Sequence record: MK250017.1 | Reading direction: 5' to 3' (one strand) | Length of the DNA: 64,000 nucleotides | In this document: positions 690 through 61,276 of the stretch, one piece after another | How positions within the stretch are numbered: the stretch's first letter is position 1 | Layout: each line of letters opens with the position of its first letter | Notes under the pieces: model-generated | The model's input: the letters and a program-made list of their open reading frames with translations, nothing else | Told to the model about the DNA's origin: nothing | Databases searched by the model: none | Program-made: the position numbers and the translations under genes

Positions 690-811
690 GAAGTGTGTAG
701 TTTAATTGGTAAAATATCCTTTGAATAGGACTGTGCGCAGATAGAACATAATGTTAGTCATATTAATCGCATTATTGATAATGATGTTGGTTCGATTCCA
801 ACGACACTTCC
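690..811 (+). ncRNA. tRNA-like RNA with expanded multi-hairpin central domain
   Basis: GAAGTGT(690-696) pairs with ACACTTC(804-810). D arm GTTT-AATTGGTA-AAAT, T arm GTTGG-TTCGATT-CCAAC. About 69 nt central insert. Confidence 0.6.
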
Positions 812-5598: not shown

Positions 5599-8154
5599 AT
5601 GGAATATAAAAGTCCGTTATTAAATTAGATAATTTCTATATTAGACAAACGTTCTGAAGCTGGTGAAAAAAGAATTAAGAAGACAGAAGATTATGTTAAG
5701 AGTTATGATACATCTATTACTCGTCATATAAACAAATAGGTTGAAGAACTTAATACATCTATAAAAACAGCAACAGATAAAGTAATAGGAGATTTAAATA
5801 CAAGTATTAATAATACTGTTGATACCATATCACATGATATTTTGAGTGTTTCAACAAACCTTAAAACCGCCATTGAATAGATTTACTATAATATTAATAC
5901 ATCTATTAATGGCGGTAAAACTGATACATCTATATATCTTATTGGTTTAAAAAATGAATTAGAAAGAAAGATAAATGATGTTGACTAGAAGTATAAAATT
6001 GCTGATAGTTAGTTATCAAGTACGTTAAGTTAGAATATAAAAGATGTATCAACTAAATTAACACAGAAAGTTAATATAATTGATACAAAATATGATACAA
6101 GTATTTCTAACTTATCATAGAAGCATGATAGTTCATTTATATAGGTTACTAATTTAATTTCTAGTTAGGGAACTTCAATTGGTAATAAAATTACAAGAGA
6201 TATTAGTACAGCTAAATAGGAATTAAATTCTAATATATCTACCATATAGAGTAATTTAAATGGTAAAATTGATAATACAAATACTTCTATTAATTTATAG
6301 TTTGATAGAGTTGCTAGAAAATTAGAACATTAGAATACTTCAATAGATGATATATCAATACGCTTAAATACGACGTCAAGAGCAATAGTAAAAGCATTAA
6401 ATACATCAGCTAATGATTTATATAATATTACAGATGATATATCTACAAAATTAAAAAGTACAATAGAAGGTGTAAAAATAGATATAACAGGAAAATATGA
6501 TGCAGAGATTAGAAAGTTAAATACATCTATTAGAAATTTAGATCTTGATACTACTAACTCATTAAGTACATTAAATACATCTGTAACAACATTAGAAACA
6601 AATTAGAAAAAATTAAATACATCATTAGCTAGTTTACGAGAATCATTTGATAAATTAGTTGATACTGAAGATGTTAATGGTGTTATAGATACATTCAGAG
6701 AAGTTGAAGATTTTTTATCTAATATATCAGATGAAAAAACATTAACTGGTATGTTATCTGAGTTAAAAACTGGAATAGATTCACACATTGATGCAAGTAT
6801 TAAAGATATATCAAATGCAATTGATAATGTTAAAGAAGAAATAGGAACAAATATTAATAATAGAGTTAATGCGTTAGAAACAACAATTAATACAACTGTA
6901 AATACAAAACTTACAGAAATTAATTCATCTATTAATGATATTAGTACACGTTTAAAATAGTCAATAACCGATCAATAGACATATGTATCTACAGAAATTG
7001 GTAAAATAAATTCATCAATAAAAGATTTAAATACAACAATTAAATAGAATGTTGATACATCTTTAAAAGCAATTCAATCTAAATTAGATTCATCATTAAA
7101 AACAGTTTCAGATTCATTAACTTCAACAACAAGTAGAGTTGCAAAATTAGAATTAAATAACGTAACTGCTGCAAAGGTAACAACAGGTACAAATACAAAA
7201 TTATGGAATGATACAACTGACAGTATAAATGAAGATTCATATGTTATTAACAAATAGGTATTAACAACTAAAGAAAATAATATTGAAAAAACATATGAAT
7301 AGAAATTAGTAAACAGTAATATTATAAAAGAAATTAATAAATCTGAAAAAGCAGTTGCATCTAATTTATTAACTGTTAATAATAATATTGCTTCTATTAA
7401 TACAAAATTAAGTAATATTAATTCAAGTATTGGTAATATATTAAATTCTTCATATATAAACAAGAAGAATAAGTATACAACAAACGGATTTAGTACAATA
7501 GGTGGTTGTTTAGATTTTATTATTAATGATATGTATTATACTGCACCTGCAGCTGTAAATGTAACATATACAGTAACACCTACATCATTTATTAGAGGTA
7601 AGAATACAAGTGTTACATTTAAATATACAGTTAATAATTATCCTAATAATATATAGAGTATTACATATAATGGTGCTACAAAAACAGAAAGAACATTTAC
7701 AGAAACAATTACAGTAAGTAATTCGGTATCAAGAGCATTATCTGTAGTTTCTAACTATGTTGACAGTAAGGATGCTAGACCAACATCATTTAATAAAACA
7801 TTAACAGTATATGCTAATTTAGAATTATATGTTTGGACATCAACATCAACATCATTTAATAAAGCATATACATCTGCTAATATGCCAGTTGGATATACTA
7901 CATATACATATAATTCTGGTAATTATAGTATAAATGTAAATAATGGTACTGCAGCAAAATATATATTCTTTGTTTCAGATAAGAATTTAGTTGAATCAAA
8001 ATTCTTTGTATATGAACATGGTGGTGCACCAACATTAGGTGGTGGTATTACAAATTTAGGAACAATAACAATATAGAAGTATGATGTTGCATAGACATAT
8101 TACTTATATAGATCTAATAATGTCCTTAATGGTAATTGGGACATTAAATTTTAA
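5599..8154 (+). CDS. fibre-like protein B (code 15, 851 aa): coiled coil + Thr-rich beta (Ig-like) C-terminus
   Basis: Frame 1 is open except for TAG. IDTFREVEDFL at 6685. Joins track ORFs 6751 and 7882. Confidence 0.85.
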
Positions 8155-43159: not shown

Positions 43160-46100
43160 TTAAGCGTTTCTGAAGAAACCATCGATAGTCTTATTCTTAA
43201 AAATAAATGTAACTCTACCTTGTGTAGGTATATTATTACCATAATAATTATGATTTGTCTAACCTGGATGTAATGGATGTTGAATACCTTTTTGCTGAGG
43301 AACAACTCTGTTACCAGCTGTATGAGCAGGTTGCTATACATTATTATGTTGTTGAGTATTAGCAGGCGTACCTGTATTAGTTGTAATAAGATCTAATAAT
43401 TCTCTAATACCATCAAATCTATTAAGAATTGCATTCTCATCAAGTCTATCAAATGAATTCTTCATTCTATCAACTGCTACTGCAATATTATTAATCTTAT
43501 TAGCAAATTGCTATAATGCATTATTACGTGCTTTTTCCTTATTAATAATTTCATCATCTAATGATTTTAATGCTCTACGTGCAGCTTCAAGTTTAGTTGT
43601 ATATATTTTAACTTTACTTGTAGTAACTTGTATCTATGCAGTAAATGTTTTTAACCTTGCAGTATATGTACGCATAGAACCGGAAGTAACATTCATATTT
43701 CTATTAATTTCTGGAGATGTTAATCTCTTTATATTATTAATAAACATATTTATATGAATTCCTAACTGTTTCTGGCGTTGCATTTCTCTTGACAGATAAA
43801 TCATTTTCTTTGCAATCTCTAAATAAAGATCCATAAATTGTGATGTTCTCCTAAAATCAATACGATCAGAAGCTTTTGAAACACCTACCATCTGTCGTTG
43901 CATTTTTGTTAATACATTACCAAAATTAGTAACTGTTGTAATAGGCTTAACTTTAGTATTAAATGATAATTGATTTATTATTTTCCTATATACACAAACA
44001 ACTTTATATACAGAAACTACAAATTTCTGTGCAATATCAGCAGATGGTTTTGAGGTTTCAAATATTTTACCACTTATACTAAAATATGTAGCTAACTATG
44101 TTAATACAGATGTAAACTTAGATGCAACTTCATTTCCTTGCGATAAAACTTTACCCTTATCATCTGTCATTGCTGTTATTATTCTCTTAAGATTATCTAC
44201 AGATGTTTTAATTGTTTTCATTACAGCATTGACTACTTTAGCGGTTGATTGAATTTTATTATATTTTTCCATATTTTCTTTTTTAGAAAGATTATTAGAA
44301 ATAATAGTAATAAAATCAACAAATGCATTTGCAATGTTTTGAGATATTGTTCTTATGAATTTAGATTGTAAACATAAATAATCCTTTGACTATGCAGTAG
44401 TTCCCTTTTTATTAGATGTTAATGATAAGAAAGGTTTTAATGTATTTGAAAAATCTTTTACTGCTTTCATAATAGGATTAATAGTATTCTTTATAATATC
44501 TGCAATACTTTCCGCTTTCTCTATAAAACCTTCATTTGCAAAACTCTTTACAAGGTAATTTATAAATTCTACAAACATCCTACCTACTTCTCTTGCAGCG
44601 TTAGTAAATGCACCACGTTTTAATTTCTTCGTTATCGGTATTAATTTACCATCTTTATCTTTAACATAATGATCTACATATACACCTGTTGCTAATTTAA
44701 GAATTGCATCAACATACTGACCAACTCCTTCCATAACAGGTCCAATAGAACTACCTATTGCATTTAATGCATCTTCCGTTTTATTCCCCCAGAATGAACC
44801 ATGTCGTTCAAATACTGTTACTAATTGATCTACAAAATAAGAAAATGTTGTAGCAACAGAAATTGCTGCCATTATAAAATCAATTGGTGTCACTTTAGCA
44901 AGATGTGGTACAGTATAATTACCATCTTTATCTTTCATATAATAATCTGTATATGTACCCGTTGCTAATTTCATAATAGCATCAACAAATTTACCTACAC
45001 CTTCCATAATAGGCATAATAGAATCTTTCATTGCATCCATTGCCCATATCATATTAGGTTGTAATTGATTAAAAGATTTTCCTAACTAAACAATGAAATC
45101 ACCAAAACGTTCTGAAACAAATGTTGCAGATGTAGAAAATATAGAAGGATCTACCTATTCATATTCAGGTTTACCATTTTTATCATAACCTGTTACAATC
45201 TACATAGTAGAAACTTTAATTACTGTATCAACAAATTTTGATACTGCATCCATAACAGGTTCCATTACCTAACCAACAGTTGATATAGCAAACATTGCTT
45301 TAAATGACATCTTATCAAATGCATCACTTAACGACTATAAGAATATATTAAACTGAGATGAAATTGCAGTTGCTGCCTTACTAAAATCGGTAGCAGTTAC
45401 TTTTCTAAATATAGGTTTCTTATTATTATCATAACCAATTATATATGTACCTGTTGCAACTTTCATCACAATATCGACAAAAGTACTAACCTATTTCATA
45501 ATAGGATCCATTACCTACATTAATAATGATATTCCTAATATTGATAATGCATCAAGTTTTTTAAAACCATCACTTAAACCTGTTAAAAATTCTGTAAATC
45601 CTTTTGTAACAGCAGAAGCCGCATCTGCAAATACAGTTGCAGGCAAATGTTCATACATAGGTTTACCATTATCATCATAGCCTGCAATATAATTCATTGT
45701 TGCAACTTTCATAATAATATCAATGTAATCAGATATTGTTGTTAATATAGGACGTAATGCCATCGAAATTATTAATGCCATTGCAGTTCCGTCAAAATCG
45801 CTAAATGCTTTAACAATTGCTTGCATTGAACCAAGAACACTATTAACATCATCTTTTGATTTGCCTAACATTATTTCTGAAAATGTTTGAATCATCTTTG
45901 AATCACAAATCTCTGTTATATATTTCATCTACATAACAGTTAATGTTAATACACCAAATACTGCCATAATAATAGGAGCAAATGCGCCAGCGGCAATTGC
46001 CTATGCCATTTGTATAGGGTTCGGTGCAGCAGCTTTTATAACATCATACATTACTTCATATAATGCTACCGCTGTTTTACCAGTCTCCCTCATTTTCTAT

Positions 46101-54480: not shown

Positions 54481-54488
54481 CAAAGATA
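54481..54488 (-). promoter_or_regulatory. Bacteroidota-type -7 promoter element (early)
   Basis: Minus strand reads AAATGTGTATCTTTGTATT. Confidence 0.7.
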
Positions 54489-58216: not shown

Positions 58217-58423
58217 TTAATCTTTACTTGTTATTTGATGAACTGATAGCAATAGTCGTGAAACTGCCATCAAACACATTGCATGAATATATGTAATCTT
58301 TGGAAGACCAAAAACAAATGGCATTACATAATTCCAGCAAATCATAAAAAAGATTGCACCAATTATAATACAAATAATTGAAATAATTACCATTCCTATA
58401 AGTTCAAAAAAATGTTCATTCAT
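58217..58423 (-). CDS. small membrane protein
   Basis: 68 aa with two hydrophobic segments. Confidence 0.7.
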   Translation of the reverse strand: MNEHFFELIGMVIISIICIIIGAIFFMICWNYVMPFVFGLPKITYIHAMCLMAVSRLLLSVHQITSKD

Positions 58424-58539
58424 ATTACTTATTATTTTTAATTATTATTTGTTTTGTTACTTAATAAACAATATAAAATAGAGGATATAATTTCTCTTTT
58501 ATATCGTTTTTTAGCATATCTACCTTTTGATTTAACTAA

Positions 58540-58706
58540 GGTCTCTTGTTTCATTTTTCTCATTGTTGTAATAATGTTTTTATAAATAAAAACCTATGTT
58601 TCTTGTTTCACAGACACGCTACTTTTTAGTATAGTTAAATTATTTAACTTCTTTCATCCATAGTTGGTATCTCCGCAAGCGTAAATTCGGGTAAATTCAT
58701 CCCTAT
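58540..58706 (-). ncRNA. putative TnpB omegaRNA scaffold / right end
   Basis: Minus strand: GGG-ATGAATTTA-CCC, ACGCT...AGCGT helix, AGTTAAAT-A-ATTTAACT, GTTTTTAT-TT-ATAAAAAC immediately 3' of tnpB. Confidence 0.65.
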
Positions 58707-58722
58707 TTATATTTTATATTAA

Positions 58723-59856
58723 TTAAATATTTAATTGTCTTAATCCTTCTACTAAAATATTCTAAGCAGCATTATAATCTCTATCAATTAAAGATTTACA
58801 ATGTGGACATATCCATTCTCTTTCACTTAATTTTAAATCTTTATAAATATAACCACAATTATGACATGTTTTAGATGATGGATAGAATCTATCTATAACT
58901 ATTAACTACCTTCCATACCACTTACATTTATATTCTAACTAACGTCTAAATTCAAATAAACTTAGTTCCTATATAGATTTAGCTAATTTATGATTCTATA
59001 ATATACCTTTCACATTCAAATCTTCAATACAGATAACTTGGTTTTCGTTAACTAGTTTTGAAGTGATTTGATGCAAATAATTCTGTCTCTAATTCTTTAT
59101 CTTTTCATGAACTTTAGATAATTTAATTCTTAATTTATTTCTATTGTTACTTCCCTTTTGTTTCTTACTTAACTAACGTTGTAATTTTTTTAATTTCTTT
59201 TCTTGATTTTTATAAAAATGTTTATTTTCATATCTATTTCCATTTGAATCTACAATAAAATCTTTTATTCCTAAATCTAAACCTATTACTGTATCTAAAT
59301 ATTCTTTCTATTGTATTTTACAATCTATGAGAATTGATAAGTAATATTTTCTTGTAGTTGTTTTTACTAATGTTATAGACTAAATATATTTCTAATTATG
59401 ATTTAAATATATCTCATTTTTCCTTGAGCATTTAAATAATATATTCTTTAACTATTTTATTAAAGTTATTCTATTACCTTTTATTTTATCATGTTTATAT
59501 TTAAATATAGTATTTGAAAATTTACAAGTCTATTTTTTATCTTTTTTTGATTTAAATTTAGGATAACCTTTATTAAATTTAAAAAAATTATTATATGCAA
59601 CCATTAAATCATTTAATGACTACTATAAACATACAGAATATACATCATTTAAAAATAAATATTCATCCTGTTTCTTTAAATTAGTAAGATATTTACCTAA
59701 TTGAGATAAAGAACATGTTTGCTTATTCTATTCATACTACATTTTCTTATAATCTAATAATTTATTATATATAAGTCTACAACAACCTAATTGTTTAGAA
59801 ATAAAATCCTCCTAAACATTATCTGGATATATTCTTATTTTAATTGCTTTTAACAT
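58723..59856 (-). CDS. tnpB: RNA-guided endonuclease TnpB (code 15, 377 aa, 17 in-frame TAG), absent from ORF track
   Basis: [30 protein letters not shown] (D 59275), IEDLNVKG (E 59023), CHNC..CPHC zinc finger, DRDYNAA (D 58777). Confidence 0.93.
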
Positions 59857-60007
59857 AATATAATAAAAAATCGTTTATATTTTAATTTGTATAAATTTGA
59901 CGGGTTGATACAAATTATTAATATAAACGATCTATAAATATCTTTAATTATATATTATATTCAAAATTATAAAAATAGTTTAATTCAACCCGTCAAAGTT
60001 TTAAACT

Positions 60008-60033
60008 NNNNNNNNNNNNNNNNNNNNNNNNNN
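60008..60033. other. assembly gap (26 N)
   Basis: Run of N in the sequence. Confidence 1.
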
Positions 60034-60054
60034 ATTTTTGAAATAATGTAAATA

Positions 60055-60267
60055 TTAAAAATTATTGTAATAATTTATTAAATCAGCTTTCATTTCTTTA
60101 CGAAACTGAGTATCTCTCTTTCTATTTCTAATTACTCGATCTTCTGCAATTTCACAATTATAACGTCTCCATTTATTTAAAATAGAACGTTTATACTTAG
60201 GTTTAATTTTACCTTTATTGTCATGCATATAATCATACGCAGCTTGCTCTTTAAAATTATTACTCAT
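60055..60267 (-). CDS. small basic hypothetical protein
   Basis: 70-aa ORF, TAA stop. Confidence 0.6.
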   Translation of the reverse strand: MSNNFKEQAAYDYMHDNKGKIKPKYKRSILNKWRRYNCEIAEDRVIRNRKRDTQFRKEMKADLINYYNNF

Positions 60268-60299
60268 TGTATCTTAAATATAATTTTAGTAATGTCAGA

Positions 60300-61200
60300 A
60301 AAAGAAAAAATTAAACTTCATAAATTTGCGTTTCAAAAATTTGCTGCTACTTACCAAATCTACAAATATGAAGTTTAATCATTTGTATTAATCTATACTG
60401 CAGAAAAATTATTATAGTATAAGTTTCATTGCAATTGAACTTTACAACTATAGTGATAATCCACTTATACCTTCTTTTACTCTAAAGACTTTTATATGCA
60501 ACTTCGACATATGTAATTTATCTACATACCGTTTACATTAAAGTTACTTTATTTCATCATGCTTTTATAACCATATTCACAACCCTCTGTATATCACCGA
60601 TTCATTTCTTTTCATATAGAAATCAGGGTCTTTAAGCCTCACTGTTATTGGCTATAACTATTATCCTCAAGCACTACCAGATAAAGTCTTTTTGTTTTTA
60701 TGGTGCATCTCTCATGCCTCCTTTTATCATAAAACAAACAAAACTAGTAAGACAAATAACGTTTCTTACAACTCCTACGAATTTAACTCCAAAATTAAGA
60801 TACATCTCTTAATATTAAGTTGGACACTTAAATTAAGTGGATAAAGTTGTACGACTTGAAAATATAATCACCAAAAGAATAATAATATTTTCTCAGACTT
60901 TATCATAAACGATTCACTAAATTCTTTTATGGAACTTATTTCTAATTAAATGAGGACTCATTTAAAATAGGTTCTCCCGAAACATGCGGTTTATCCATAC
61001 TCATTTAAAACTTTAAATAAGCGTTGTTTATAGCACTCATCAGAATTTATTATGTATTAACATTTATAACACATCATTTGTATTTAATTATTCTATATAA
61101 CTTATATAGATATAAACACAAATTGTTTAATAATCTAATAAACAAAATTATTAATATTATGTTATCTTAATGTTAATTAAGAAAAAATTTCAAAGAACAC
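60300..61200 (-). ncRNA. candidate large structured non-coding RNA
   Basis: About 0.9 kb without a long ORF, many helices, lying directly downstream of an early promoter at 61220-61227. Confidence 0.55.
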
Positions 61201-61219
61201 TTTGTTTTTAATAACAATA

Positions 61220-61227
61220 CAAAGATA
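61220..61227 (-). promoter_or_regulatory. Bacteroidota-type -7 promoter element (early)
   Basis: Minus strand reads AATAATGTGTATCTTTGTATTGT and points into non-coding DNA. Confidence 0.7.
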
Positions 61228-61276
61228 CACATTATTTTTGAATTAAAAAAATATATTGAAGAAAAAATTAATATTT

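Follow-up and report, generated by a model that had tools for sequence, protein, structure and literature searches.

The stretch of DNA analysed here (the window, 64,000 nucleotides of sequence record MK250017.1) carries on its minus strand, at 58723-59856, a tnpB gene of 377 codons whose frame stays open only when TAG is read as glutamine. We suggest that the gene probably belongs to a non-autonomous, tnpB-only element of the IS200/IS605 kind (IS1341-like) that persists by homing, and that its dependence on the code of its host phage is a by-product. The element is mobile and not domesticated, because it is missing from the same site in two relatives of the host phage, Lak-A2 and Lak-C1. An earlier note on this DNA, made from the letters alone, had considered a domesticated nuclease; the presence/absence polymorphism between near-identical genomes, the spread of the family over several loci and the intact ends of the element all speak against this.

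The TnpB protein

The coding sequence (CDS) ends in TAA and uses 17 in-frame TAG, 10 CAA and 2 CAG as Gln codons, with the first TAG at codon 15. TAG is the only interruption of the frame, there being no TAA, TGA or frameshift over the 377 codons. The plus-strand frame across 58723-59856 contains many stops, and translation table 11 gives no open reading frame (ORF) of 60 amino acids or more within 58423-60055. The earlier note had the coordinates right (it left out the strand, which is minus), its count of 17 TAG against 12 CAA/CAG in 377 codons with a TAG at codon 15 was reproduced on recounting, and the gene is, as it claimed, invisible under code 11.

The protein matches the NCBIfam model guided_TnpB (NF040570) over residues 5-368 with 333.3 bits (cut-off 100), and PHROG 506 with an E value of 4e-122. 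Its residues 3-372 can be aligned from end to end with ISDra2 TnpB (E 2e-61), the structure of which has been solved. The IS200/IS605-type model NF038281 scores 380.9 bits, under its own cut-off of 425, and the IS607-type TnpB model gives 194 bits on the same protein, compared to 381 for the IS200 type. The RuvC triad D194/E278/D360 aligns to D191/E278/D361 of ISDra2 TnpB, and the D-E-D triad is kept in 13/13 Lak copies compared. A zinc ribbon (C331-x2-C334 and C350-x2-C353) is present between RuvC-II and RuvC-III; the intact triad and zinc finger described earlier are both there, the latter with its two CxxC pairs. Judged by its sequence, the gene encodes a full-length TnpB with a complete set of catalytic residues.

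The host phage and its code

The window comes from Prevotella phage Lak-A1; it is 100% identical to MK250015 except for 26 N at 60008-60033, and corresponds to Lak-A1 110678-174677 (placed by the tRNA and tnpB positions). The reading of TAG as Gln is justified by the genome itself, because 12 long ORFs of the window (the largest of 2868 amino acids) are open only with TAG readthrough, two clean tRNA(CUA) genes are present in Lak-A1, Devoto et al. 2019 (PMC6784885) reported a CTA suppressor tRNA and release factor 2 (RF2) in Lak, and TAG and CAA/CAG swap in the same alignment columns of the TnpB family. Of the 17 TAG positions of tnpB, 13 are occupied by CAA or CAG in one or more homologous copies. 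The gene shows what marks a code-15 'late' gene in sequence, namely TAG where relatives have Gln and a CUA suppressor tRNA in the genome. As the earlier note held, tnpB is unreadable in the standard code and translatable only via the amber-suppressor decoding of the phage.

The two tRNA(CUA) genes of Lak-A1 (c225329-225401 and c226234-226308, outside the window) flank an ORF of 256 amino acids with 11 TAG. Lak-A1 also has a tRNA with the anticodon UUA (c290204-290276, likewise outside the window), a possible reader of TAA.

Borders, empty sites and related copies

The whole mobile element, of about 1.5 kb, occupies 58569-60066 on the minus strand. Lak-A2 and Lak-C1 align to the flanks of the window at 96-100% identity and omit these ~1.5 kb, and contigs from three other samples supply independent empty-site junctions, in which the match stops at 58575 and is followed by the sequence beyond the element. 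On the gene strand, the left flank of the filled site ends in ...AAATTATTAC, the element ends in CATTATTAC and the right flank opens with AACAATGAG...; the empty site of Lak-C1 reads ...AAATTATTACAACAATGAG.... Since ATTATTACAA stands at both junctions, the register of the borders is ambiguous by up to 10 nt, and the coordinates given for the element presume a cut 3' of TTAC. A left border at 60006/60007, obtained with a first megablast, was an artefact of the adjoining 26 N (60008-60033, masked or a gap, inside the left end of the element and kept unfilled); the empty-site comparison places the border ~60 nt farther out. A small ORF of 70 amino acids (60055-60267, minus strand) now takes its final codons and stop from the element and is 8 codons longer at the empty site.

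Each of the five complete Lak genomes has 3-4 TnpB loci, and the related copies across Lak carry 7-17 TAG each. The family thereby displays what characterises a mobile IS200/IS605 insertion sequence, that is, several loci with both filled and empty alleles. Same-locus copies in other samples have an open frame with 15-17 TAG, and more than 120 proteins on record are 80-97% identical, many of them from contigs of ~550 kb. One TnpB copy of Lak-B1 (230749-231879) is missing in Lak-B7, which is 98-99% identical; that copy is already dead, its frame being interrupted by a TAA and having TAG in place of a conserved Trp. Bacterial genomes were searched by a method that detects close relatives only; the nearest copies from bacteria, in a Paludibacteraceae metagenome-assembled genome (MAG), are 42% identical. 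The same search returned a TnpB of 65% identity, with numerous in-frame TAG, on a 2-kb contig filed as a Clostridium sp. MAG (JALFMW010000168.1); this contig is probably a piece of a recoded phage that was binned in error.

Structured ends, predicted guide and candidate target

A conserved omegaRNA-like scaffold core of 110 nt (58599-58708, minus strand) lies entirely 3' of the tnpB stop codon and is made up of a hairpin on its 5' side plus a long stem, inside which sits a hairpin of variable sequence. Over 11 copies the core is better conserved than the CDS, and the pairing of the enclosed hairpin is retained across at least six different stem sequences. The tail of the right end (58569-58598, minus strand; its end set by the empty-site comparison) forms a hairpin at 58577-58594 (GGTTTTTAT..ATAAAAAC) followed by ATTATTAC. 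At other loci the stem of this hairpin is conserved and its loop is variable. The left end (~210 nt, 59857-60066, minus strand) contains a 24-bp hairpin at 59868-59933, in which 7 of the 24 pairs show compensatory changes, and a long-range arm pair (59986-59996 with 59897-59907) that is compensated in 7 sequence versions. The downstream omegaRNA-like region that had been recognised earlier is indeed conserved and structured, with covarying hairpins. Rfam assigned neither the 3' RNA nor the left end to a family, at the gathering threshold or at E<=5, and the lone match, RAGATH-30 (E 2.5), is noise. No group I intron or other ribozyme was matched in the left part under the same two thresholds. 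The element does not classify as an IStron, as there is no Intron_gpI match and the left end measures just ~210 nt.

The guide of the TnpB elements that have been studied is the flank sequence next to the right end. By this analogy with TnpB biology, the guide here would be the first 20 nt of the flank past the right end (AACAATGAGAAAAATGAAAC, 58549-58568, minus strand). TTAC at 60067-60070 (minus strand) adjoins the left end and is the candidate insertion target and target-adjacent motif (TAM). The empty site of Lak-C1 has TTAC followed by a perfect match to the predicted guide. That of Lak-A2 (~92307-92320) carries a 3-nt insertion and a mismatch straight after TTAC, in the part of the predicted target nearest the TAM; this allele might resist cleavage, or the changes might be a scar left by repair. 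At one other locus, the copy at 392 kb in Lak-A2, TTTAC precedes the element; the remaining loci are less clear. We rejected a fixed internal guide: CAYAGGTTTTT, just past the scaffold, is found once in Lak-A1, inside the element itself.

A solo omegaRNA-like right end with no tnpB, 90% identical to that of the window, is located at 185600-185721 in Lak-B1 and is present in the same form in Lak-B7. The Lak-B1 copy begins precisely at the conserved core, and such a right end could act in trans as the source of a second guide. Contigs of a pig metatranscriptome and of other runs contain, at high depth and with unrelated flanks, 39 nt of the core (58654-58692); the core motif seems to be common to elements outside Lak.

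TAG usage and selection

TAG accounts for 0.586 of the Gln codons of tnpB and for 0.30-0.61 across the family (mean ~0.45), while base composition predicts 0.426 (p=0.059 for tnpB). The adaptive excess of TAG proposed earlier is not borne out, as a share of 0.59 is not above the AT-driven 0.43 (p=0.06). A TAG fraction no higher than the AT-driven expectation was one half of the two-part test that the earlier note had set against its own proposal, and this half is essentially what we find.

The TAG density is high, at 4.5 per 100 codons compared to 0.5-2.6 in the other large recoded genes of the window (one 93-codon ORF of the window has 3.2). We attribute the density mainly to Gln-richness, because the TAG share fits composition while Gln makes up 7.7% of the protein, compared to 3.2% in late genes. 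Part of this richness was created by TAG at positions where relatives have, for example, His, Ser or Leu. Within Lak-A1, tnpB ranks third of 472 ORFs in TAG density, 13th of 98 in TAG share and fifth in Gln content. The statement that tnpB has the densest TAG use of the window thus holds per codon; as a share of Gln codons it does not, the gene at 5599-8154 reaching 0.88 against 0.59. That gene (plus strand, 851 amino acids) has TAG at 22 of its 25 Gln codons, far over the expected 0.43, and has no PHROG match.

Values of dN/dS (the ratio of non-synonymous to synonymous substitution rates) among copies are 0.11-0.23, with dS at 0.5-0.86, and in the locus lineage of the window synonymous changes equal or outnumber non-synonymous ones. 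The gene is under purifying selection.

Proposed history and function

We envisage that the TnpB family has long resided in a genome of 26% GC in which TAG means Gln. Because of this long evolution, its Gln codons would have drifted to mutational equilibrium, at ~43% TAG, and additional TAGs would have displaced other residues, giving rise to a Gln-rich protein. TnpB can in consequence be made only where the tRNA(CUA) of the phage decodes TAG, with standard decoding halting at codon 15. Such dependence probably postpones TnpB to the recoded phase of infection; it also restricts the element to code-15 phages, with which the 42% identity of the nearest relatives found in bacterial genomes agrees. 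The dependence itself is real, and the evidence points to a by-product rather than a selected lock.

Homing between co-infecting Lak phages is the most likely function. TnpB and its RNA would cut the unoccupied allele (TTAC plus flank) in a co-infecting relative, and the break would be mended by recombination that copies the element into it (homing or retention); jumps to new loci would be rare and would require help in trans. The earlier note had also raised homing into co-infecting relatives, which is plausible, since the Lak-C1 empty site offers what appears to be a complete target.

Several observations weigh against this account. Classical IS200/IS605 elements insert 3' of a short fixed motif without target duplication and have subterminal hairpins, not inverted repeats. 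The element in the window, with TTAC at the insertion and hairpins at both ends, nevertheless has a 10-nt repeat at both junctions, unlike the classical outcome. A copy on IMG/VR contig 3300014937_000006 stands between the two units of a 55-nt direct duplication (91% identical), which a classical insertion likewise does not predict. The candidate TAM is supported by one clean and one fair junction. Twelve RNA-library runs, four of which were compared, match parts of the stretch; their sequences are contigs that cover parts of the element, and transcription, ends and strand are not readable from them. Compared to the pooled recoded (late) genes of the window (0.365), the TAG share of tnpB is nominally high (p=0.013), and there may be a mild enrichment of TAG relative to late genes. 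Lastly, a second TnpB clade in the same Lak genomes has 0-1 TAG in 16-20 Gln codons, so that the gain of TAG is not inevitable for a TnpB resident in Lak.

The sequence duplicated on the IMG/VR contig comes from the 3' end of the gene that lies upstream. A general trait of target-site duplication is not supported, as the similarity of each copy's left flank to its own right tail (mean 11.8) does not exceed that of cross-locus pairs (mean 10.7; p=0.31, 9 loci). Members of the second TnpB clade (for example Lak-A1 292461-293723) are 49-51% identical and have a GC content of 27-28%, compared to 20-21%; either this clade arrived recently or its gene is required ahead of the code switch.

Means of movement

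No Y1 tnpA (NF033573) was found in the element, the window or five complete Lak genomes, and the control genomes were matched. Lacking a Y1 TnpA of its own or from the genome, the element can at best be non-autonomous. The earlier note had stated that there is no tnpA; this is correct for the element, for the window and for the Y1 type, but Lak-A1 has a TAG-coded serine tnpA of the IS607 type ~125 kb from tnpB (43752-44357, outside the window). Candidate means of movement are mobilisation in trans by this serine tnpA and homing stimulated by TnpB.

We consider it possible, though on the unlikely side, that the element is moved in trans by the serine transposase, and not by TnpB homing alone or by a Y1 TnpA of the host. 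IS607-family serine tnpA genes with 5-7 in-frame TAG occur in Lak-A1, C1 and B7 (156-169 bits, cut-off 110), but Lak-A2 and Lak-B1 have TnpB elements and no such tnpA. The 14-mer that opens the left end of the TnpB copies at other loci is also located 25-27 nt upstream of the serine tnpA and of its partner ORF, where, however, it could be a promoter. The short identical cores at the junctions would suit integration of a recombinase type, yet junction repeats overall are not above the cross-locus controls (p=0.31), and the TnpB itself scores as IS200-type over IS607-type.

The ORF that adjoins the serine tnpA in Lak-A1 (44409-45758, outside the window) encodes 449 amino acids and has 10 TAG (8-15 across the ORF family, of which each Lak genome has 1-5 copies). 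The family shows RuvC-like motifs in the order of TnpB; the ORF next to the serine tnpA has LDLNPN, IEDLN and LPD...IGRRG, without a zinc ribbon. Sequence searches of NCBIfam, PHROGs and PDB with the family were blank, and a local profile comparison with TnpB gave a weak match (E 1e-4, probability 28%). A broader proposal, which we hold to be rather doubtful, is that the Lak phages host transposable elements written in their own code (TnpB, the IS607-type serine transposase and the 449-residue family), spread between co-infecting megaphages by RNA-guided homing, for which the code would be both a timer and a containment barrier. If this were true, the nuclease would be made only after the code switch and standard-code bacteria would be closed to these nucleases.

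Origin of the code dependence

The earlier note had offered an adaptive explanation, in which a high TAG density was selected so that a resident or domesticated nuclease would appear late in infection, as a weapon on co-infecting genomes. We regard this as improbable. A TAG at codon 15 and 17 in total would make leaky expression under the standard code practically impossible, but a single early TAG would lock the gene equally well. That 17 TAG were reached in two separate lineages agrees with selection, as does the nominal excess over the pooled late genes of the window; the share is nevertheless not over the composition expectation, and the family mean of ~0.45 equals it. The guide, furthermore, would depend on where the element inserted, which is also the case for selfish TnpB elements.

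The location of the gene is a further argument for a selected lock. As had been claimed, tnpB is embedded in a TAG-free block, the 20 flanking ORFs having no TAG in 91 Gln codons. Upstream of the element and co-oriented with it is a promoter-like 12-mer, TGTGTATCTTTG (61220-61231, minus strand), which includes the Bacteroidetes -7 box TAnnTTTG and has 53 matches in Lak-A1 against ~4.5 expected. All 40 ORFs that are co-oriented downstream of the 12-mer are TAG-free, compared to 271 of 472 genome-wide (Fisher p 7e-11). The 12-mer looks like a marker of TAG-free, standard-code and perhaps early transcription units, and a motif of host-type promoter character, confined to sites upstream of TAG-free genes, supports the description of the block as 'early', with transcription from host-type promoters. 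The placement of tnpB behind it, taken earlier as design, is however incidental, because the insertion is recent and polymorphic, the second Lak-A1 copy, with 8 TAG, is at the border of a TAG-using block, and one neighbour resembles a head-maturation or Clp-type protease.

It is very improbable that the protein is a domesticated, nuclease-independent TnpB that works from a fixed locus as a regulator guided by RNA (TldR-like). The element does lack tnpA and its omegaRNA-like partner is conserved, but all copies retain the RuvC triad and the zinc ribbon, the locus is polymorphic, the family is spread over several loci and the predicted guide is identical to the local flank. That the TAGs are true stops in the relic of a dead transposase is hardly credible, for although the table 11 frame is broken 17 times and the related Lak-B1 copy really is broken (in-frame TAA, TAG at a conserved Trp), TAG alone interrupts the gene in the window, relatives have CAA or CAG at 13 of the 17 positions, dN/dS is ~0.15-0.2, the catalytic residues are intact and the frame is open in independent samples.

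Comparison with known systems

ISDra2 TnpB (PDB 8EXA, 8BF8 and 8H1J) resembles the Lak protein in its domain order, its D-E-D triad, its zinc ribbon and, putatively, a 3'-encoded RNA that would reach the right end. The Lak element differs in having 17 TAG-coded Gln, no Y1 tnpA partner, a megaphage host and a conserved RNA core that is fully past the stop codon. The IS1341 group (tnpB-only, non-autonomous derivatives of IS200/IS605) shares with the Lak element a single tnpB ORF between structured ends, the presence of a number of diverged copies in each genome and a solo copy of the right end with its omegaRNA-like region. What sets the Lak element apart from this group is its residence in a stop-reassigned phage lineage and an unusually elaborate, covarying left end. 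IS608 of Helicobacter inserts 3' of TTAC and has subterminal hairpins, just as the Lak insertion appears to lie directly 3' of TTAC. In IS608, however, insertion is carried out by its own Y1 TnpA, none of which was found in the five Lak genomes, and the Lak junctions share 10 nt, more than the 4 needed.

In-frame TAG codons have been described in archaeal TnpB and IscB (bioRxiv 10.1101/2024.09.30.615893), which like the Lak gene are split or missed by standard annotation. In the archaeal genes, TAG is a rare codon for pyrrolysine within the code of the cell itself, whereas in Lak TnpB it encodes Gln, makes up 59% of the Gln codons and is decoded by a phage-supplied suppressor only. The recoded late genes of Lak and crAss-like phages (Devoto 2019, PMC6784885; Borges et al. 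preprint, 10.1101/2021.08.26.457843) likewise have in-frame TAG that ties translation to the code switch, and the TAG share of tnpB is similar to that of other recoded Lak genes; these are structural, lysis and replication genes, unlike tnpB. The main texts of the two studies do not mention transposable-element genes. TnpB is common in phages (PMC12607003), and our literature search yielded no study that deals with TnpB or transposases in Lak or in any other stop-recoded phage. A functional analogy may be drawn with the homing endonuclease genes of T4-like phages, where a nuclease cuts the allele that lacks the gene in a co-infecting relative and recombination then copies the gene in. Target choice in the proposed homing of the Lak element would be set by RNA instead of protein.

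The element is a case of a selfish element nested in a phage that has adopted the private code of that phage, with an RNA-guided nuclease that is untranslatable elsewhere. Surveys of TnpB diversity undercount such nucleases, because annotation in the standard code splits or misses compact nucleases. Filled and empty alleles in near-identical Lak genomes offer a natural setting in which homing guided by RNA can be tested between co-infecting phages, and the TAG-rich and TAG-free TnpB clades of one genome give a handle on how recoding relates to the timing of expression.

Other features of the window

The promoter-like 12-mer is present in the window at 1247 (plus strand) and at 54481, 61220 and 63087 (all minus strand). 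The ~950 nt behind the copy at 61220 (60268-61219, minus strand) contain no ORF of 60 amino acids or more in either code; they are 79% conserved between the Lak-A and Lak-B clades, have a folding z-score of -2.7 (20 shuffles) and may be a long leader or a non-coding RNA. At the other end of the window, two intron-bearing tRNA-like genes at 577-681 and 691-811 (plus strand) lie in a cluster with tRNA Cys and Met. ARAGORN, run with introns on Lak-A1, assigns them to Ile(aat) and Asn(gtt), and Rfam reports a tRNA at 577-680.

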